Sequence record: NC_061441.1
DNA: 64,000 nt
Strand: one strand, 5' to 3'
Shown here: piece by piece, positions 5,484 through 30,697 of the stretch
How positions within the stretch are numbered: position 1 is the stretch's first letter
Layout: every line of letters starts with the position of its first letter
Notes under the pieces: model-generated
What the model was told of the DNA's origin: nothing
Seen by the model: only the letters and a program-made list of their open reading frames with translations
The model's database searches: none
Translations under genes and position numbers: made by a program

Positions 5484-6305
5484 TTAGTCTCCCACTGCCG
5501 TGTACCAGAAGTCCCAGCCTACAGTATTGGTGCCGCTGGACTTAATGGTAAAGCCACCTAACAAGGCGTTCTCGTTCACTGCACTAGTACCATCAAGGTT
5601 GTAGAGCGTAAACGTCTTAGCCTGGTTCGTTGCAGCATTCAAGAACGTAATCTGAATGCTAAGGCAGCGGTTGATGAACGGGCTGTTGAAGATAACGTGA
5701 ATGGTATCAGTAGTTGATTTGTTCACGATGCGACCCATGTTCTGGGTAAAGCCCGTGTTCATATCTCTGTTACTACCGACCCATGCGTTTGGAATCACAG
5801 CACCTGTTACAGGGTCAAGTGCTTGCGCTGTTCGATACTCGTCGATAGCAGCATCACGCCCCGGGTTACCAGTAGGACCCGTCGCACCAGTAGGACCGAC
5901 TGCTCCAGTGTTACCAGTAGCGCCAACAGGACCAGTGTTGCCCGTAGGACCATTACGTCCTCTTGGACCACGAGGGCCTGGGCAGCCGTCTTCACCGTCA
6001 CGACCGTCACGACCGTCAGCACCAGGCAGACCGCGTAAGCCGTCTTTACCCTGCTTGCCTTCGCGCCCTGACTTGAGCTGGTCGGCAGTAGGCAAACCAA
6101 TAACGTTCGTCTGACTGCCATCAGGCCAAATGAGTGTTAACGTACCTGTTGTCGTATCGAACTGAGCACCCTGAGCACCTGGAATCTTCGCAGCTTCTTG
6201 CGGACTGATAAACGCGACCGCAGTAGAAGTCTTCTTACCTAGCACTTTACCGACGGGGTCATTACCACCGTCGATGAGTGAAGGATTAATGCGTGTTAAA
6301 GACAT
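5484..6305 (-). CDS. Collagen-like fibre protein D (24 Gly-X-Y triplets, C-terminal beta-sandwich tip domain)
   Basis: GREGKQGKD...GNPGRD repeat; N-terminal FDTTTGTLTL..GLPT domain; C-terminal 'VIFNSPF...GFTI...WDFWYTAVG' typical fibre-tip domain. Confidence 0.8.
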   Translation of the reverse strand: MSLTRINPSLIDGGNDPVGKVLGKKTSTAVAFISPQEAAKIPGAQGAQFDTTTGTLTLIWPDGSQTNVIGLPTADQLKSGREGKQGKDGLRGLPGADGRDGRDGEDGCPGPRGPRGRNGPTGNTGPVGATGNTGAVGPTGATGPTGNPGRDAAIDEYRTAQALDPVTGAVIPNAWVGSNRDMNTGFTQNMGRIVNKSTTDTIHVIFNSPFINRCLSIQITFLNAATNQAKTFTLYNLDGTSAVNENALLGGFTIKSSGTNTVGWDFWYTAVGD

Positions 6306-9425: not shown

Positions 9426-9450
9426 AAGAGGGGCCGAAGCCCCTTCTTTT
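9426..9450. terminator. GC-rich hairpin with C(UUCG)G loop on the minus strand; T-tract on the plus strand
   Basis: AAGAGGGGC-CGAA-GCCCCTTCTTTT lies between two fibre genes. Confidence 0.6.
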
Positions 9451-11467
9451 AGTCGAATACTACGTTTGTGATTGCGATGTAGTCCATGTTGATACCATCA
9501 CCCCTATCCCAACCAGACGACACGTACAGCCAAATCTCTTGACCGACAGGTACGTCTACGTTTATCGTGTAGGTCTGAATTGCGGTGGTATTCAGTGGAT
9601 GGAAGACATTGTTCGGCGCAGTGCGCTCGTACCAATCAAGGCCACTGTGCCATGAACCCTGTTTACCTGAGTAGCGAATATCAATAGTGATTTGAGTAAT
9701 GCGGCGCGTGAAGAAGTTGTTCCATTTGAACCAACCTTTCGAGCCACCCCAAAGAACACCATAATCACCATCAGGCGAACGTACCTGCGACCAGAAGTCA
9801 CCAAAGCCACGACCACCAGTATGTTCAATCTGATAGCAGTACCAAGGGAAACTATCTGCAACAGGAGGTTGTGCGTTGTCGCCTTCAATCGTCACGCAAC
9901 GATAAGGAACCGTGAAGTCACTAACGTTGATATGTGGCGGCTGAATAGGACAGTACACATAGTACGACCAATCACATCCGATAGGTGCAGTCACGCGTAC
10001 AGTGATGTTGGCGCGAAGCACATGCTCAGGGTATTTCCAAAATTCGAGTGTACCAGTTTTCCCAGCTACAACGATTGACGTATCGAGCAGGTTCATGTTC
10101 TGGTCAAACACTTCAAACTTCGTATCAAACGAATTGGCTACACAAACAATAAGCTGTGCGCGAATGTCCGTTTGAGTTCCTAATGCAAAATTATCTTCTG
10201 TAGTTGGATGCCCGGCAGAGTACACGCTATAACTCTGACATGGGTGCATAAACTCACGCGCACCACGTTCACCAGGACAGTACAGGCTGTAGAAACAGCT
10301 CGCAAGTGATGCAGCGTTACCGAAGTCCTTGCTAACCACACGCACCATGATATCACACGCAACACCTTTCGGGTCGAAGTAGAAGTACAGGTAACCTTCT
10401 CCTGTCTGTGCGTCAAGTGTTGTTGCGATACGTCTGCCTGATTGATAGACCTCGATGAAGTCGAAGGTTTCCCATGACGTGTAATCGAGATACATCCAGC
10501 CAGCTACCCAACCGATGAAGTGATAATACTCAAACGCGTTCGAGTTCTGAATGCGTTCTGTAATAGGCCAGACAGTTGCATGACAGGGCGCTGGGAAGAT
10601 AGGGCTGCCGATATAATCTGGATGAATGACGTCAGGGAAGTTGATAACGTCATACGCTGCCTGACTATCGAGAGCCAAACCGCCACGGTCAGAAGGTGCT
10701 GCAAGACGAGGCGGATAGACTTCTAAGCTCCAGCTATAGCCTTGCGTAGTACGCACACGCACCATGATACGCATATCAGCAGCGTCAGGGTCGAACTGGA
10801 ACTTGATACGCGAACGACCAACAACCTTACCGCATGTCGAAGCAACACGCACACCCATGTGGTACACGTCAACGCTTGCACCAGCAGGAGCATACGATGC
10901 AATCATCAGCTCCACGTAGCCTTCAACAGCAGGCATTGCGTAGATTGTTTCAGTGATTGTTGCACCACGACCATGAGTGGACGCATACGGTACGTTAGGG
11001 TTAGCATATGTACCAAGCCCTGAACGCGAGGCCACGCCGACAGGGTCGTAGGTCTCAATAGTCTTAATACCAGGGCGATTGATAGATCGTCCAGTAGGTG
11101 GAGCAAATGAGTTAACAAGGCCGAAGCCAGTACGCCCAGCATCAGGCAAATCAAAGCCAGCAGGATAGCCTTTAAGAATATCATACTTCTCACGACCACC
11201 TGAGCCGATGCCATTACCAGAGCCTTTAGTTGTCGATGTAGGACCGCCGCCACACGCACCAGTTTCGAGATTCGAACAAGGGTCATCGTAAGTGGGATCG
11301 AACGAGTCATCAATTAGATGCCAGCGTTGACCCCACTGATTTCTGACGCTGAACTTCTCAGGAGTAAGAGGAGTCCAGTCACCTTCTTGTGTGCGTATGA
11401 ACATAGGCGTGTCAACACAATCGTGCCAACCGTTATTCGCAGCATTACGAACGCGAAAACGTGCCAC
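9449..11467 (-). CDS. Multi-domain fibre tip/receptor-binding-like protein (672 aa, GTG start)
   Basis: RBS TAAGGAG. N-terminal triple (R)N..W motif, three tandem ~90-aa beta-sandwich repeats each ending YPP/YCP, C-terminal lectin-like domain. Confidence 0.7.
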   Translation of the reverse strand: MARFRVRNAANNGWHDCVDTPMFIRTQEGDWTPLTPEKFSVRNQWGQRWHLIDDSFDPTYDDPCSNLETGACGGGPTSTTKGSGNGIGSGGREKYDILKGYPAGFDLPDAGRTGFGLVNSFAPPTGRSINRPGIKTIETYDPVGVASRSGLGTYANPNVPYASTHGRGATITETIYAMPAVEGYVELMIASYAPAGASVDVYHMGVRVASTCGKVVGRSRIKFQFDPDAADMRIMVRVRTTQGYSWSLEVYPPRLAAPSDRGGLALDSQAAYDVINFPDVIHPDYIGSPIFPAPCHATVWPITERIQNSNAFEYYHFIGWVAGWMYLDYTSWETFDFIEVYQSGRRIATTLDAQTGEGYLYFYFDPKGVACDIMVRVVSKDFGNAASLASCFYSLYCPGERGAREFMHPCQSYSVYSAGHPTTEDNFALGTQTDIRAQLIVCVANSFDTKFEVFDQNMNLLDTSIVVAGKTGTLEFWKYPEHVLRANITVRVTAPIGCDWSYYVYCPIQPPHINVSDFTVPYRCVTIEGDNAQPPVADSFPWYCYQIEHTGGRGFGDFWSQVRSPDGDYGVLWGGSKGWFKWNNFFTRRITQITIDIRYSGKQGSWHSGLDWYERTAPNNVFHPLNTTAIQTYTINVDVPVGQEIWLYVSSGWDRGDGINMDYIAITNVVFD

Positions 11468-11476
11468 ATGTTCTCC

Positions 11477-11968
11477 TTATGGGCGAACCCAAATAGCTCC
11501 TGGAGCTACTTCGTTGTCTATAGCAGGGTCAGTGTCTTGAACAAACACCTGTACTGCACCAGGATTACCGGGAGCACCCGTTGCGCCAGTAGGACCAGTT
11601 GGACCGGCAGGACCACGATTACCCACATAACCCTGTTTACCCATCTGACCATCAGAACCACGAGGACCTGGGCAACCGTCAGTACCGCGACGACCATCGT
11701 TACCCATGAGACCGTCGATACCGTCACGACCAGAAGGACCAACACCACCAGCAGGGCCATAGCCTATGCTGTGAATGGTAGGCAGCCCAGCAATCTGCAA
11801 CTTACCAATCGACGGTATATTCAGAGCAAGCACACCCGTCAGAGCATCAAACGAACCGTTGAGTGTGCTGTCATCTTCGGCAGTGTCTACTGTCAGACCG
11901 CCTTGAGTCGCTACGACAGGACCAGATGCGTTGGTCTTGACTAGCGCTATATCAACTTTTTCTACCAT
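11477..11968 (-). CDS. Collagen-like fibre protein C (23 triplets)
   Basis: GPAGGV...GNPGAV repeat; N-domain FDALTGVLAL..GLPT; ends QDTDP..APGAIWVRP. Confidence 0.85.
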   Translation of the reverse strand: MVEKVDIALVKTNASGPVVATQGGLTVDTAEDDSTLNGSFDALTGVLALNIPSIGKLQIAGLPTIHSIGYGPAGGVGPSGRDGIDGLMGNDGRRGTDGCPGPRGSDGQMGKQGYVGNRGPAGPTGPTGATGAPGNPGAVQVFVQDTDPAIDNEVAPGAIWVRP

Positions 11969-11977
11969 GATTACTCC

Positions 11978-12610
11978 TTACGGCCAGGTAGTGCCTTGAT
12001 CTTTTGTCGGGTCAACCCAGATTGTTCCAGCAGCAACTGCGCCTGGCTGGGTAGCACTCACAATGATAGACAGACGACCAGCAGGACCCGCTGCACCAGT
12101 AGGACCTGTAGGACCTGTAGCGCCAGTCTTACCAGTAGGGCCTGTGCCACCACGAGGACCAGTAGGTCCTGTAGGCCCCATAGGACCTGTGCGACCGTCT
12201 GGGCCAGTAGGACCAACAGGTCCAGGCAGACCATCACGTCCATCTGGACCTGGAATACCCTGTTCCCCGTCAGGACCTATCTCACCGTCACAGCCCTGTT
12301 CACCAGGATTACCGTCACGCCCATCACGACCGTCTTTGCCGTCTGCACCAGTTTCACCACGACCACCCTGACGACCTTCTGGTATGTCAGCAGCAGTAGG
12401 GAAACCATTGACCTTAACAGTCTGGCCATTAGCAAACTTGAGCGTTAGAATACCGCTGGTGGCATCGAACGACGAGTCGGCAGTAAGCTCGGACGGCACG
12501 TCTGCATCAGAAGGATTGATAGTCAGCGTACCGCGCGAAGCTCTGATTGGAGTGGGCGTAGAGGACGAACCAGCTTGAATGAGGCCCGTGTTTACTTTAA
12601 TCAGACCCAT
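11978..12610 (-). CDS. Collagen-like fibre protein B (about 34 triplets)
   Basis: GRQGGR...GPAGRL repeat; N-domain [14 protein letters not shown]; ends [17 protein letters not shown]. Confidence 0.85.
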
Positions 12611-14052
12611 TACGTTTTCTCCGCTTTAGCAACGATATCCGTATTGTGCACCAACACATCTCCTACGAAGTAACAGTCAAACGGGTCAACGTCAATATCA
12701 ACCGTCTGCACCTGCTCATCGACACGAACAAATTCAGATACAGCGATAGGTCCTTTACGACCTAAGACAGTTTGGCCCATGCGAACATCACGCGCAGGAA
12801 CATAGCGCCATACGGACTCATCATAAATCAATACTGGGTGTTCGTGAGTGAACTTCTGACCATTGATAACATAGTAATGATCTTCTTGGCCGAGCTTCAA
12901 CGCTTTCACCGTAGCGTACACGGTGTTGCCTTTGAGACTAGGCGAAGACCAATTACGAAACTCCTTAGGCTGGTTCGAGTAACCAAGCAGCGCATCGCCG
13001 ACACGCAAGTTCTCTACAGCTTTAGGACCAACGATAGTGTTCACGGTACTGCCAAACACGATACAACCAGATGTTGCAGTGTTGATAGGGTTACGCGCCA
13101 CGACAGTCAGAGCAGAACGCACCGTAACAGTCGGACGTGAAGGTTGACCCATATCAGTTACGAGACAGCTAATGGTGCCTTTGATTGTACGATCAGCACC
13201 TAAGCCTAAACGCAGATAGAAGTTAACAATGCAGGTGTTTGTCTCGACGGCATCCAGAGTCACACCTTCTGTGGTTGTGATAGTCCATTTATACTTATAC
13301 GGACCAACGCCACCACGAGCATTGACAGGCAGATACGCCAGCGACGTAAACACATCAGAGCCTTGCACTGTACGTTGACCCACCATGTACAGATTAGACA
13401 CTGACGCAGCAAGAGGTGTGATTGTAGGCAGAGGCGGCGCAGGAGTAACGTTGGCTGTAGGGTACAACCAAACGAACACTTTACCGTCTGTAGGCTGCGT
13501 GTTAGATAGCACGGCTGTAGTGATAGGCGCTGGACCAGTAGCACCAGTAGCCCCCGCAATACAGCTAGGACCATCATTACCACGAGGGCCGATAGGACCA
13601 GTAGCACCAGTCGCGCCGTCAGGACCAGTAGGACCGTCAGGCCCTTGACGCCCTGTATCTCCTGGAGGACCGTCTTCACCGTCACGTCCAGGGTCACCTA
13701 CAGGACCAGTCTTACCTCTATTGCCTACACCGCCCGGACAACCTTGTTTGCCGGTCTCACCATCACGCCCGTCACGACCATCTCGACCAGGAGAACCCGG
13801 AGCGCCTCGACGCCCAGGTTTACCTTCGCCAAACATCGCAACAGTGGGCAACCCAGGGATGTTCACCACATCCCCGTTCTGCTTGATGAATACCAACACA
13901 CCTGTCTTGCTGTTAAATCTTACGCTGGCGAGCTGTGTTAATGTTGCCACATCGGAGTTTTCAAACTTAGCCACTCCGTCAACACCGATCAATGATTTAC
14001 CTTCATCGTTCGGAGTTGTTTCGACTTGCGAAAGTTTTAACTGTGTTGTCAT
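12610..14052 (-). CDS. Collagen-like fibre protein A with Ig-like domain and C-terminal Hint (intein-like) domain (480 aa)
   Basis: 29+3 Gly-X-Y triplets; PKD/Ig-like segment ([11 protein letters not shown]); Hint motifs SG|CIVFGS, FTHEHP, TVDIDV, VLVHN|T. Confidence 0.85.
12643..13065 (-). other. Hint/mini-intein domain (141 aa), no endonuclease
   Basis: Cys1 codon at 13063-13065, block B TxxH (THEH), block F Asp, penultimate His-Asn ending at 12643, +1 Thr. Confidence 0.8.
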
Positions 14053-16391
14053 TTCGGTTCAACCTTAATGCACAAGTTACCAGTCAGCTTCGAACCATAG
14101 CTAGTGATCTGCGAATCAACGATACGCACCTTAGCGACGATATCAATGAAGCCTTGTGGTTGGTTCTCTTTCAGCACCGTGAACATCTGCGTCAGGCTCA
14201 CGTTCGAATACGCAATCACTTCTGTCAGACTCGTATCAGAGGTAACTACGTTGAAGCCTGCGCTGCCAGTACCTTTGAGTCCACGGCCATATTCAGCTTC
14301 GGACACGCCAGGCATCTTAAACGACAGGACGTATTCGATATGCTCTTTGCCACTCGTAGCAGCAAAGCCTGGACCAAGTTGACACTGGAAGTCAGCGATG
14401 CACGTCAGGAACACACCCTTAGAGAAGTCGATACGTTGAACGATGGTCAGTTCTTCGGAGTCTTCGACGTTCTGTTGGATGTTGTACATGTTCTTAGGGT
14501 CAGCTTCTTCGGCCAGTGCCTGTGTATTGCTGATCGTAATCTCTGGCCATGTGCCTTTGATAACGATACCTTCACCCTGAATGATTGAAGGAGCAGCGAT
14601 AGGTACGTCGATCGGAGGCAGACCTTGACGCTTGAACATGTAGCCTGTTGGCGTAGGAATAGCGTCGATGATAACACCATCAACTGAACTATCTTTTGAA
14701 CCTACAGCCATGACGTTCTCGAAGATTGTTATCTCAACGAGTGTATCGGCAGGTACCTGCGAAGTTGTTTTCAGTACGTTGCCAGCTACCGTGAAGTCAA
14801 GCGGATGAACGGTCAGACCGCCCATTGCCATTACACAGTGCGCTTTATTCAGTGGTGTAGTTGGCAGAACAAATGTATCAGCATCATAAGGCAGGCGATA
14901 CTGAGCAACACGAATACGAGTAGACCAGTTGGCGCGTTCTTCATAGCGAGCCACGTAGAATGAATACTTCTGACCCGATGGAATTGCTTCGGTCAGCGTT
15001 ACCTTGTTACCAGCATTGAGCTTATAGACCGTCGTTGGCTGCCAAGTAGAACCGACAACGCAGAAGATCATGTCAACGCTATCAATCGGCTTGTTGCCAA
15101 GAGTGAACGTAGTAGTCTGGCCGTCACCTGTGCCTTCGTAGGTATCGAACAACACCACATGGCCCTGCGACGGTTCAATACGGAACTGTCTGAGGTCAAG
15201 CGTCATACGCTGTTCAGGATAGGACGAAAGCAGAAGCTGATCATCAACAACGCTGTATGCAACACGAGGCTGCAAGACACCCGACGTACCTACCAGAAGG
15301 TCAGTAGAGCTATCAAGAATCTCGGACAGCGTGTAGCGCATCTTATCAGGAGTTGCTGTGGTCACGACAGAACTAAACAGCATCTTGCCTGGAGGTACGA
15401 ACAACGTTGCCATTGTCTGACGAGAGCTACCACCAACAGGCGCCCAATAAGGCTTCGCGTCTTTACCGCGCATCAATGCCCATGCTTCAGGCACGTCATT
15501 GTTATCAGGCCAAGGTAGACCAGCAGTAGGCGTAGTCGGGTTAGTGATTCGACGCCATACAGCAATCGTTGTCTGGGCAGATACGAATGGAATCGCACCG
15601 TCTTGGTTAACAAGCTGTCCGCCTATGAACTTGAAGTGACGACACGCACCAGCGCCTGTACCTGAGATTGTTTGAATAAGCACAATCTCATTCGCTTTCA
15701 ACACGGTAGACAGCGAAGCAATCTTGAACGTGTTAGCGTTAATGAATCCAGACGAGGTAATCTGACCACTGAACACACGGTCATGCTCGCTGAATGCCCA
15801 GTAGTAGGAGCCTGCTCCATAACGATACGCAGTTCCTGGGGAGCGCGAGCCATCAGAGTTAACGTGCATGTCGAGTACAGACACGGCATTGAACACGTTG
15901 TCGCTCAAGCTCGGCAAATTTTCAAGCGTGGCCACACTCGGAATAGAAGTGTAGTCGGCCATCTTAACAGCAAGAATCTTTTGAATGTCCTGCTGAATAT
16001 GAACGAGTAAGCTCACACGGCTGATACTGTTAGGTACAGCGATGATAGGCTCTTGCAGGACAATGTGACCAAACGGTCTATTGTCAGAAAGCATAATCAG
16101 TATTTCACCGACACGCTTCAACTGCTCCCCAGCGGCGTAGCTGAGTTTTATGTCAAAGATAAAGCGAGCGCTGTTCTCGGTAAGAACCTGAACATATGAC
16201 AATGCGCCCGACGCAAGCTCGTTGCCAAGTAACTGCTCTGGAACCACTGCTGGGTTAGAGCCTACAAAGTCACCTGCTTTAAACGACACTGGCTGGACAG
16301 CGAGTCCGCCAGAGTTAGCGTTCGCAACGGCCTGTTCTCCCTGAGGCGTTAGACGCAAAACGTCAACGTAGATAGATTCAGTGGCCATCAA
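14049..16391 (-). CDS. Baseplate/tail-collar fibre-attachment protein (780 aa)
   Basis: N-terminus 'LRLTPQGEQAVANA...' resembles tail-collar/fibre N-domains; repeated 'GDGQTTTFTL / GVLQPRVAYSV..LLLSSYP' Ig-like modules; follows the wedge genes. Confidence 0.6.
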   Translation of the reverse strand: MMATESIYVDVLRLTPQGEQAVANANSGGLAVQPVSFKAGDFVGSNPAVVPEQLLGNELASGALSYVQVLTENSARFIFDIKLSYAAGEQLKRVGEILIMLSDNRPFGHIVLQEPIIAVPNSISRVSLLVHIQQDIQKILAVKMADYTSIPSVATLENLPSLSDNVFNAVSVLDMHVNSDGSRSPGTAYRYGAGSYYWAFSEHDRVFSGQITSSGFINANTFKIASLSTVLKANEIVLIQTISGTGAGACRHFKFIGGQLVNQDGAIPFVSAQTTIAVWRRITNPTTPTAGLPWPDNNDVPEAWALMRGKDAKPYWAPVGGSSRQTMATLFVPPGKMLFSSVVTTATPDKMRYTLSEILDSSTDLLVGTSGVLQPRVAYSVVDDQLLLSSYPEQRMTLDLRQFRIEPSQGHVVLFDTYEGTGDGQTTTFTLGNKPIDSVDMIFCVVGSTWQPTTVYKLNAGNKVTLTEAIPSGQKYSFYVARYEERANWSTRIRVAQYRLPYDADTFVLPTTPLNKAHCVMAMGGLTVHPLDFTVAGNVLKTTSQVPADTLVEITIFENVMAVGSKDSSVDGVIIDAIPTPTGYMFKRQGLPPIDVPIAAPSIIQGEGIVIKGTWPEITISNTQALAEEADPKNMYNIQQNVEDSEELTIVQRIDFSKGVFLTCIADFQCQLGPGFAATSGKEHIEYVLSFKMPGVSEAEYGRGLKGTGSAGFNVVTSDTSLTEVIAYSNVSLTQMFTVLKENQPQGFIDIVAKVRIVDSQITSYGSKLTGNLCIKVEPK

Positions 16392-28888: not shown

Positions 28889-29176
28889 TTAGTCTTCTGG
28901 GCAGATAAGCACCTGACGACCCTGTTGATAATAAGAGTCTGGTGCTCGCCCTATTACGATAGCGCGTTTGCACATAAAGGCAGGCTTGCGCAGAGCAACG
29001 TTACACCCACCGTGCGACAGTACAGCCATAGCTTCTGCTTTAGCAGGGCCTGTCAGACACAACATATGCGAGTAAAACGGCTTTTGTGCTTTCTTCATCG
29101 TGCGTGACATTAAAGCACGGATGCGCTCGGCCTGGCCGGATGTAGGTGCATGATCGCAGTACACGGCGATATTCAT
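28889..29176 (-). CDS. Hypothetical protein (95 aa)
   Basis: ORF in the co-directional run, 4-nt overlap with the upstream gene, RBS GGAG. Confidence 0.7.
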   Translation of the reverse strand: MNIAVYCDHAPTSGQAERIRALMSRTMKKAQKPFYSHMLCLTGPAKAEAMAVLSHGGCNVALRKPAFMCKRAIVIGRAPDSYYQQGRQVLICPED

Positions 29177-29898
29177 TTGCCAGCTCCTTTGATGTTCAGA
29201 ATGCCGTTGAAAACAGTGAACTTATCAGAGAAATGGCCGACCACGTTACCGAGACTATGCACATCGCCATGGCCACCGTAAGGATTAAAATCTGCGAGGT
29301 CGATTTGCAGATGCGATGCACTGATGGGATTGAATCCTGTTTCTTTAATGAAGATGGTATGGCCATCATAACGAGGCTTATCAGTAAAGAGCACACCCAT
29401 GTTAGACCACGTATTGGAGCTGGACTCCAGCACGAAGACAGACGCCTGGTAAAACTTCGCTCCCAGGTCTGGTGCCGTGTCTTGGACGTAGTGGTAATCT
29501 TCATGATCAGCAACGATAACGTCCACAGTAATGAGTTCCGCTTCATTTCTACGGTTGCGCAGCCAGCTTTGCATACAGCGCGTAAAGTAGTCCGCCATTG
29601 CGCAACAAATGCAGCTACGGTTCGTCGGGTCTTTTTCGGCGCGAGGGATTGCAGTGACGTTGCGGTCGGAGAATTTCCATGTGACATGATCGGTTACCAG
29701 ATTACCAGATTGAAACTCAAACTCCTCGTCATTGATAACGAAGATGTTTTTACGCTGCATTACGATGTTCGACAATACATGGGCCGCGCTGTTTTGCAGG
29801 CCCAATGGATATTGAAGCAATACGCGAGCAGTGACGACACGAGGAACCCCGTTTTCGAGATAAGCGAAGTTCATTGTGCGATGCGCTACAGAAAGCAT
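29173..29898 (-). CDS. Hypothetical protein (241 aa)
   Basis: Fills the space between neighbours on the coding strand; no family recognised. Confidence 0.7.
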   Translation of the reverse strand: MLSVAHRTMNFAYLENGVPRVVTARVLLQYPLGLQNSAAHVLSNIVMQRKNIFVINDEEFEFQSGNLVTDHVTWKFSDRNVTAIPRAEKDPTNRSCICCAMADYFTRCMQSWLRNRRNEAELITVDVIVADHEDYHYVQDTAPDLGAKFYQASVFVLESSSNTWSNMGVLFTDKPRYDGHTIFIKETGFNPISASHLQIDLADFNPYGGHGDVHSLGNVVGHFSDKFTVFNGILNIKGAGK

Positions 29899-29908
29899 GG
29901 TACGTCCT

Positions 29909-30697
29909 TTAGTTCAGGTTGATTGTCTGTCCATTTACAGTTACATCCTGACCTGCCTCGATATTAACAGCGCCCCTTACATCCAACACGTCATCGCCCT
30001 TAACAGTAACTTTACGACTCCCACCAATCTCAACAGTCTGGTTGCCTGTGATCTTAGTGTACTGATTGCCTGCATCGTTCTTCTGCGTACCTTTGAACTT
30101 GATACGCTTCTTCGGGTCAGGCTTCAAGGACTTAGGCGTCATCACAGGGTCATTCAAGATGTAGTCTGGAATGTCGTTCTTACTGCCTGTGATAATCAGT
30201 TGCTGATTGCCTACGATAGTCTGGTTAACGTCTCCCATGATTGTCATGTTGAAGTCTCCCGACGTCACAAGGAAGTGCTCGTTGGTCAGGCGGTCAATGA
30301 TGAGCTGGGTGCCAGTAGACAGACGCACACCTACGCGATGCGGATAGTTCACGAGGAACTCAGGCAGTTGGTCAGCTTCTGTCATGCGCACATTGGTGCT
30401 ATACATACCTTCATGCAATTGACCAGTAGGGAACTTCACATTGACCTTAGCACCACGCGTAGGAATGAATGAAGCACCGAACGTCACACCCTGTGAGCCG
30501 CCTTTAAGCCCTTCGAGATGACCAACAGCAGGGCGAATCCAGGGTATCATGTCGTCGGCAATGTCGTCAGTCAGACCCATGATACGTGCTCGAATCTGAC
30601 CTATGCGTCGAGGGTCGTTGTTGTCGATTACGATTGCCTCATAATCCATTTGAGGGTCGATGCCTTTCTTGGCATTCACACTATTCAGAGGAATCAT
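29909..30697 (-). CDS. Baseplate central spike (T4 gp5/VgrG-like OB fold plus beta-helix, no lysozyme domain)
   Basis: YEAIVIDNNDPRRIGQIRARI...PWIRP OB-fold motif; C-terminal octad repeats (GNQTVEIGGSRKVTVKGDDVLDV). Confidence 0.85.
   Translation of the reverse strand: MIPLNSVNAKKGIDPQMDYEAIVIDNNDPRRIGQIRARIMGLTDDIADDMIPWIRPAVGHLEGLKGGSQGVTFGASFIPTRGAKVNVKFPTGQLHEGMYSTNVRMTEADQLPEFLVNYPHRVGVRLSTGTQLIIDRLTNEHFLVTSGDFNMTIMGDVNQTIVGNQQLIITGSKNDIPDYILNDPVMTPKSLKPDPKKRIKFKGTQKNDAGNQYTKITGNQTVEIGGSRKVTVKGDDVLDVRGAVNIEAGQDVTVNGQTINLN

Follow-up and report, generated by a model that had tools for sequence, protein, structure and literature searches.

In the 64,000-nucleotide stretch of NC_061441.1 analysed here (the window), the minus strand carries a fibre gene for a 480-residue collagen-like virion protein that ends in a Hint domain and a short tail (Table 1). 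The region around this gene (11400-14100) is 100% identical to that of the Erwinia jumbo phages pEa_SNUABM_16 and pEa_SNUABM_18 (Alexandravirus) and 79-83% identical to that of vB_EamM_Alexandra and of Dickeya phage AD1. The window comes from an Alexandravirus jumbo phage of Erwinia amylovora, the fire-blight bacterium.

The protein's N-terminal domain is presumed to be the end attached to the virion. It is followed by collagen repeats that run without interruption, with a glycine at each third position of residues 77-173 that is invariant in an alignment of 16 homologues. Two cysteines within this region or at its end, Cys105 and Cys164, show no variation either (16/16) and could form inter-chain disulfides after lysis. 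The Ig-like domain gave a weak match to SprB repeats and is kept, at 44% identity, in the Hint-less orthologue of Dickeya phage JA29; it is likely the distal (tip) domain of the mature fibre. An earlier note on this DNA had put the Hint domain at the tip of a collagen fibre, which is imprecise: it does lie at the distal end of a collagen-like protein, but the cap motif, the Pro-rich linker and the Ig-like domain intervene. The interval proposed there, 12610-13065, is exact and comprises Hint domain, tail and stop codon, with the Cys330 codon beginning at 13065.

Table 1. Fibre gene, parts of its product and neighbouring genes, in positions of the window
Feature	Positions	Strand	Remarks
Whole fibre gene, 480-residue precursor	12610..14052	-	NC_061441 gp112, 'virion structural protein'; phrog_38766 matched end to end
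N-terminal domain, residues 1-75	13828..14052	-	common to three collagen paralogues by homologous N-termini
Collagen G-X-Y region, residues 76-175	13528..13827	-	Pfam PF01391, E 5.6e-14
Post-collagen cap motif ..VFVWLYP.., then start of Pro-rich linker, residues 176-204	13441..13527	-	'..IWVxP' in the paralogues
Ig-like beta-sandwich, residues 205-322 (about 118 residues)	13087..13440	-	AlphaFold2 model all-beta, pLDDT 80-93
Variable linker INTATSG, residues 323-329	13066..13086	-	ends in Gly329 (-1 residue, predicted scissile bond)
A-type BIL/Hint domain, residues 330-470	12643..13065	-	Cys330; T402..H405; D452/D454; H469-N470
QPKxFR motif, Q361-R366	12970..12987	-	surface hairpin of the Hint domain
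C-terminal tail of 10 residues, 471-480	12613..12642	-	after Asn470, before the stop codon
GGAG Shine-Dalgarno site of the downstream gene	12619..12622	-	inside codons A477-E478
Downstream 210-residue collagen paralogue	11978..12610	-	without Hint; start overlaps the stop of the fibre gene
163-residue collagen paralogue	11477..11968	-	without Hint
672-residue tail-cluster protein	9449..11467	-	phrog_26008
273-residue fourth collagen paralogue	5484..6305	-	different C-terminal domain (weak gp53-like_C match); without Hint

A Hint domain close to bacterial intein-like domains

The segment from Cys330 to Asn470 has 141 residues, the size of a mini-intein, lacks an endonuclease insert and contains block B (T402-H-E-H405), block F (D452/D454) and H469-N470, followed by T471. 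The description in the earlier note, a 141-residue Hint domain with Cys1, THEH, block F Asp, His-Asn and a +1 Thr, was confirmed by translation, Pfam, phmmer and AlphaFold2/Foldseek, as were its 10-residue C-extein and the lack of a homing endonuclease. In Pfam, PT-HINT (PF07591) aligned with residues 337-470 over profile positions 2-136 of 137 (E 4e-5) and Hint_2 matched the N-terminal strand, and phmmer against the PDB led to 2LWY, a bacterial intein-like (BIL) domain of C. thermocellum, as top match (E 8e-6, full length). An AlphaFold2 model with the 16 homologues as input reached a predicted local distance difference test (pLDDT) of about 80-91 across residues 330-472. Foldseek ranked 2LWY first for this model (E 3.9e-8, template modelling score 0.79, 27% identity), next the Tetrahymena BIL2 and next mini-inteins and hedgehog; nearly all of the top 20 were BIL, intein or hedgehog Hint domains with a probability of 1.00. 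No Pfam or PHROG match to the S74 family was obtained on the fibre protein, the fold being that of a Hint. Therefore, from the PT-HINT alignment, the phmmer match to 2LWY, the model and the Foldseek ranking, the match is far above chance, and the Hint domain is genuine, with BIL domains as its closest characterised relatives.

A-type BILs such as C. thermocellum BIL4 (2LWY) share with the phage domain the Cys1 nucleophile, the block-B TxxH, the C-terminal His-Asn and the absence of a homing endonuclease (Amitai 2003, Dassa 2004 and Aranko 2013, as cited in PMC7664689 and PMC7765530). Both are also located in variable, non-enzymatic proteins of surface type, here the collagen-like fibre protein. 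Unlike BILs, the phage Hint belongs to a virion appendage, sits at the extreme C-terminus with a tail of 7-12 residues and was inherited vertically across phage genera. With regard to the missing +1 nucleophile of BILs, the phage family has T, A, V or M at this position, which fits a +1 residue that is not a conserved nucleophile, but the copy in the window has Thr, a possible nucleophile.

Class 1 mini-inteins (gp41-1, Npu DnaE/DnaB) have the fold, Cys1, TxxH, His-Asn and the Thr+1 of the window copy in common with the phage domain, which differs from them in that it does not occupy a conserved enzyme site, does not conserve +1 and bears no sign of homing. Canonical class 1 inteins have a conserved +1 Cys/Ser/Thr, sit in a conserved host site and join two functional exteins that are contiguous in an intein-less allele, whereas here the C-extein has 7-12 residues with conserved codons that are a ribosome-binding site, and the Hint-less gp099 of JA29 simply ends ...ARNPK. 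The Hedgehog autoprocessing domain (1AT0), a lower-ranked fold match, is likewise a C-terminal Hint that frees an N-terminal functional protein via a Cys thioester; it differs by a sterol-recognition region and the lack of His-Asn, whereas the phage domain has His-Asn with only 10 residues behind it. Pretoxin HINT (PF07591; PMC3482391), the best Pfam model, serves filamentous proteins as a module for autoproteolytic release, but there a toxin domain follows downstream in place of the 10 residues, and the phage domain scores below the Pfam cut-off.

Conserved active site and variable +1 residue

G329, C330, T402, H405, D452, D454, H469 and N470 are invariant in the 16 homologues, down to 44% identity, and the catalytic positions are so too in 21 distinct gene sequences, with the -1 Gly present in 21/21. 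Cys1, the block-B Thr and His and the His-Asn pair stay invariant when the Afa-NA1 homologue and a 1304-residue protein of the very distant phage NCTB are aligned, and in the 506-residue NCTB orthologue of the fibre protein Cys1, a block B of ..TEQHP.. and the terminal His-Asn could be read from the translation. Invariant columns amount to 30% in the Hint, 19% in the Ig-like domain and 8% in the N-terminal domain. The 7-residue linker in front of the Hint is the most variable segment of all, with Gly329 at its end itself invariant. The ratio of nonsynonymous to synonymous substitution rates (dN/dS, Nei-Gojobori) was 0.10 in the Hint; the neck and Ig region had 0.11, the N-domain 0.16 and the collagen region 0.19. 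Purifying selection on the whole Hint is thus at least as strong as that on the fibre proper.

It is highly improbable that the Hint escapes processing and is kept in the virion as a head domain for structure or binding, as a purely structural role would not require catalytic residues and a -1 Gly that are invariant over deep divergence. The fold as such can serve a non-catalytic role, to judge from a free-standing, catalytically degenerate Hint-like protein of NCTB. This protein (BN7874_135, L053:1398-1859, minus strand; 153 residues) has its gene immediately behind that of the fibre orthologue with the terminal Hint and matched the fibre Hint with an hhalign probability of 96%; the strand with the N-terminal Cys is missing from it, as are Thr and His of block B, but His-Asn is kept, and it may be a non-catalytic Hint acting in trans.

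In contrast to the active site, the +1 position varies. Thr is found in 20/21 close gene sequences, including that of the window, Ala in the homologue P0022, Val in the near-identical protein of Yersinia phage fHe-Yen9-02, Met in the Afa-NA1/Sen-NF homologue and Ala in both NCTB proteins. BIL domains are reported to have no +1 nucleophile and to give chiefly cleavage products (PMC7664689, PMC7765530), and the variation observed here (T, A, V, M) fits this pattern and suggests that classical splicing is not the selected reaction. The domain had been called catalytically complete, which for splicing is true of only part of the clade.

The tail has an invariant Asp+2 and a mean identity of 0.75. 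The 3' end of the fibre gene reads gct aaa gcg gag aaa acg TAATG, so that GGAG lies 8 nt 5' of the ATG of the next gene, and this ATG overlaps the TAA stop (12608-12612); due to the overlap the downstream 210-residue paralogue is probably translationally coupled. The invariant tail codons A-E-K are the GGAG site and the spacer of this overlapping gene. In the most divergent member, P0023 (locus L039, 6390-6500), the stop is lost and the open reading frame runs 8 codons (26 nt) into the next gene, and a gag-gag-aaa-acg block nevertheless keeps the same distance to the next ATG. The conservation of the tail is therefore explained by the ribosome-binding site within its codons, and the tail is largely a coding shadow of the translational-coupling signal. 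This makes it unlikely that capping of the fibre with a functional 10-mer, as proposed in the earlier note, is what is selected.

The same evidence bears on true splicing, by which copies with Thr+1 would join the 10-mer to Gly329 to give a 339-residue fibre with a functional peptide cap. Cys1, TxxH, His-Asn and Thr+1 are all available in the window and in 20/21 close gene sequences, a single change at +1 has been reported to make BILs efficient splicers (PMC7664689), and the conserved tail with its Asp+2 would agree with this reaction. Nevertheless, we consider splicing unlikely, given the other +1 residues in relatives as close as P0022 and Yen9-02, the A-E-K codons that are in place even in the stop-less L039, and the Hint-less JA29 orthologue, which has no trace of the 10-mer.

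A further conserved element is the QPKxFR motif on the Hint surface, in which Q, P, K, F and R are all invariant across the family; it has no catalytic role that is known and might serve as a surface for contact or recognition. Such a surface would suit a reaction in which the Gly329 thioester is caught by an external nucleophile (a Lys or N-terminal amine of a virion protein, a hydroxyl, a sugar or a host-surface group) and the fibre tip becomes covalently tethered. The strict upkeep of the entire active site fits ligation as well as cleavage, and the second-best structural relative, BIL2 of Tetrahymena BUBL (6Y75/6TMM; PMC8616854), is a domesticated Hint whose thioester is used to form a Lys isopeptide. 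BIL2 differs, however, in being flanked by ubiquitin-like domains and shares 15% identity with the phage Hint; only 10 residues follow the latter, without a sterol- or adduct-recognition region, no partner was identified, and the Hint-less JA29 fibre works without such a linkage. Ligation, which the earlier note had considered for a partner, sugar or lipid, thus appears very unlikely. If true, phages would have with it an equivalent of Hedgehog cholesteroylation or of BUBL isopeptide ligation, and the retention of QPKxFR and of a complete active site with its His-Asn on several tail proteins would be accounted for.

Two candidate nucleophiles were considered and rejected. An N-terminal Gly as acceptor was suggested by the Met-Gly start of the 210-residue paralogue compared to Met-Pro in Hint-less JA29, but Hint-bearing Yoloswag has Met-Pro too, and Afa-NA1 and Yen9-02 start with Met-Ala and NCTB with Met-Leu. 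A Lys is found in every tail and could have acted in a BUBL-like manner, but purine-rich ribosome-binding sites explain the Lys and Glu codons, and the proposal was post hoc.

Distribution and proposed role of the domain

By tblastn, 53 records from this group of phages contain the Hint (Erwinia 48, Dickeya AD1 2, Yersinia 1, Alcaligenes 1, Salmonella 1), and all 53 phage records from the lineages with a Hint have it at the same place. For the Ig-like domain the number of records is 59, the additional six being Dickeya JA phages of the genus Salmondvirus. Here JA29 gp099 (324 residues) is a syntenic orthologue with N-domain, collagen region and Ig-like domain and without Hint; it ends ...ITARNPK, 7 residues ahead of the Gly329/Cys330 position, and the next gene follows 10 nt on. 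No trace of tail or C-extein sequence was detected in this orthologue, and there is no extein continuity across the 'empty site'. The JA orthologue indicates that the N-extein alone is a complete, working fibre protein and that the Hint is not needed in cis. The earlier note had raised the question whether homologues ever lack the Hint, to which the JA phages give a positive answer, and the patchy pattern of a mobile intein is not seen.

On the other side of the family, NCTB encodes the 506-residue orthologue with the same domain order and a terminal Hint (GGGG/CVHED...CIHN/AVMVAKK, slashes marking the domain borders), so that the Hint persists between NCTB and the Erwinia phages at 29-32% identity. 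A second terminal Hint is present in the 1304-residue NCTB protein, the first 470 residues of which are homologous to the 672-residue protein of the window (34% identity, E 2e-70). Hints of this family always occupy the extreme C-terminus, with a tail of 7-12 residues, and do so on different tail proteins, which points to modular re-use as for other fibre maturation domains. A tree of the N-exteins gave no clear order for the deep branches of JA29, Afa-NA1, Yen9-02 and P0023; a single loss in the JA lineage would be parsimonious because the Hint is present in NCTB and Afa-NA1, an argument from parsimony and not from tree topology. In the nearest record (G001), one Hint of the family and one insignificant match were found. 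A search for a second Hint in the window gave only a weak profile match at 29176-29913 on the minus strand (E 0.003), a 246-residue stop-to-stop frame without Pfam family, which is probably due to chance.

With no endonuclease, no extein continuity and a position that is always at the extreme C-terminus of different tail proteins, this distribution is not the patchy empty-site pattern of a homing intein. The view of the earlier note that the domain is a domesticated autoprocessing module and not a mobile intein is supported by the constant position in the phage records, the NCTB orthologue, the dN/dS of about 0.10 and the absence of both endonuclease and empty site. A selfish or neutral passenger would be a mini-intein or BIL at the gene end that is kept active only since an uncleaved Hint harms the fibre, without any benefit. 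The Dickeya JA lineage without Hint and without apparent harm would agree with this, inteins are common in jumbo phages (PMC7824862), and purifying selection on catalytic residues is expected for a passenger too. A terminal passenger, however, would be removed by one stop codon, yet the Hint has persisted from NCTB to the Erwinia phages in 53/53 records; it has no homing endonuclease, its low dN/dS concerns the whole domain and not the active site alone, and a second NCTB tail protein also bears it. A mere passenger is thus quite unlikely.

We favour, at a probability of about 0.58, a domesticated A-type BIL Hint with a vestigial tail, which together form the last 151 residues of a trimeric collagen-like appendage ('hair' or fibre) protein and cut themselves from its distal end, likeliest as a maturation or quality-control cap. 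The precursor has, as shown above, N-terminal anchor, collagen helix, cap, Ig-like head, 7-residue linker, Hint and 10-residue tail in this order. Cys330 would then attack the carbonyl of Gly329 in an N-to-S acyl shift, aided by Thr402, His405 and the block-F Asp, as expected from homology. As known from BIL and intein chemistry, the resulting thioester would be resolved mainly by hydrolysis or thiolysis, leading to a free Hint and a mature subunit of about 329 residues that ends ...TATSG and carries the Ig-like head distally. This predicted subunit has the same architecture that the Dickeya JA phages encode directly. Cyclisation of Asn470 may clip the tail as well, and where phages have Thr+1, the 10-mer may be spliced to some extent as a side product.

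The least certain part of this proposal is the role of the removable domain. A cap that acts in cis on the distal head and removes itself after maturation or quality control seems likeliest because of the functional analogy with S74, the intramolecular chaperone of other phage fibres (PMC7824862). S74 domains (endosialidase, T5 pb1) hold the same position as C-terminal, self-cleaving and removable modules on trimeric fibres and are re-used on different fibre proteins. They differ by an unrelated fold and a Ser-Lys dyad, compared to the Cys thioester of the Hint, and the likeness is one of analogy only. The proposal of the earlier note that the Hint is a self-removing folding chaperone is accordingly retained in part: the need for it in cis is weakened by the Hint-less JA orthologue, while a self-removing cap would be favoured by the analogy.

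Several observations weigh against this interpretation. No Hint is needed for folding in the JA phages or in the three paralogues that lack it, so that a role as chaperone cannot be an obligatory one. Even with tails of 1-7 residues His-Asn is strictly conserved, which is not explained by N-terminal cleavage alone. On the side of the family assignment, the Pfam Hint scores stay under the gathering thresholds, PT-HINT just so with 24.3 bits against a cut-off of 27.7. Moreover, neither virion proteomics nor experimental evidence for cleavage of the fibre protein was found in the literature; the paper on AD1 reports no mass spectrometry, and that on PaBG does not treat this protein.

To our knowledge, the S74 chaperones are the only family of C-terminal modules on phage fibres that cleave themselves off, and a Hint/BIL at an S74-like position, conserved over a deep lineage of 'hairy' jumbo phages and present on other proteins of uncultured phages, would, if true, solve the same problem a second time and by other chemistry. 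Literature searches for Hint or BIL domains in phage fibres led to no paper that describes one, and only database labels such as 'contains intein domain' were met; the likely self-removal during fibre maturation would put a known type of domain to a new use. The phages of this fibre-bearing group have been termed 'hairy Myoviridae', with the hair-forming proteins unassigned (PMC6143709). If correct, our interpretation would give a concrete biological role to BIL domains, whose role has been vague since their discovery, and in these Erwinia and Dickeya phages, which are of relevance for biocontrol, the annotated fibre would exceed the mature one by about 15 kDa, with consequences for proteomics, for model building in cryo-EM and for the engineering of fibres. 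For comparison, nature already offers the JA orthologue without Hint.

Neighbouring genes and wider occurrence

The fibre gene is part of a tail-appendage cluster with four collagen-like paralogues (480, 210, 163 and 273 residues) and large proteins of 780, 672 and 958 residues. Homologues of the 672-residue protein were detected at L003:524-4438, in Yoloswag (L006:5524-6450) and in Afa-NA1 (L002:5619-6845), and those of Yoloswag and Afa-NA1 are labelled 'putative large intein domain protein'. The 672-residue protein of the window matched neither a Pfam family nor the Hint profile, and no Hint motif is present in the Afa-NA1 homologue, which is complete. The label seems to have been propagated from the Hint-terminated 1304-residue homologue of NCTB and looks like an annotation error. 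In Yoloswag, a free-standing HNH endonuclease gene (L006:4657-5514) is located between the 163-residue paralogue and the 672-residue homologue; it is absent from this place in the window.

Two other records deserve caution. For two queries from this fibre cluster of jumbo-phage type, Afa-NA1 (Alcaligenes, L002, 78 kb) and Sen-NF (Salmonella, 108 kb) gave identical tblastn coverage, identity, E-value and bit score; these equal statistics, together with different stated hosts and non-jumbo sizes, suggest chimeric or mis-assigned assemblies or a shared contaminant. An Erwinia-type fibre gene (77% identity) was also detected on a 34.7-kb contig (L041, JAVWLC010000001.1) of a metagenome-assembled genome (MAG) named 'Raoultibacter sp.' (actinobacterial), which is probably phage DNA mis-binned into the MAG.

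Scans of viral and genome contigs with the Hint alignment led to further Hint-terminated proteins. Viral examples are found on L030 (1494 residues, HN/LKM), L038 (HN/K) and L031 (16-residue tail), and MAG examples (L042, L049, L050) come from Myxococcales (HN/Y), Saccharibacteria and Woesearchaeota. The terminal Hints on large proteins from the MAGs and from L030 and L038 have tails of 1-8 residues and no +1 nucleophile. Fold matches in BFVD included several proteins from uncultured Caudovirales that are described as 'Hint domain containing' or combine FN3 with a Hint, and a Ruminococcus phage match turned out to be a classical PT-HINT followed by a WHH nuclease toxin. The terminal Hint may thus be an under-described architecture.

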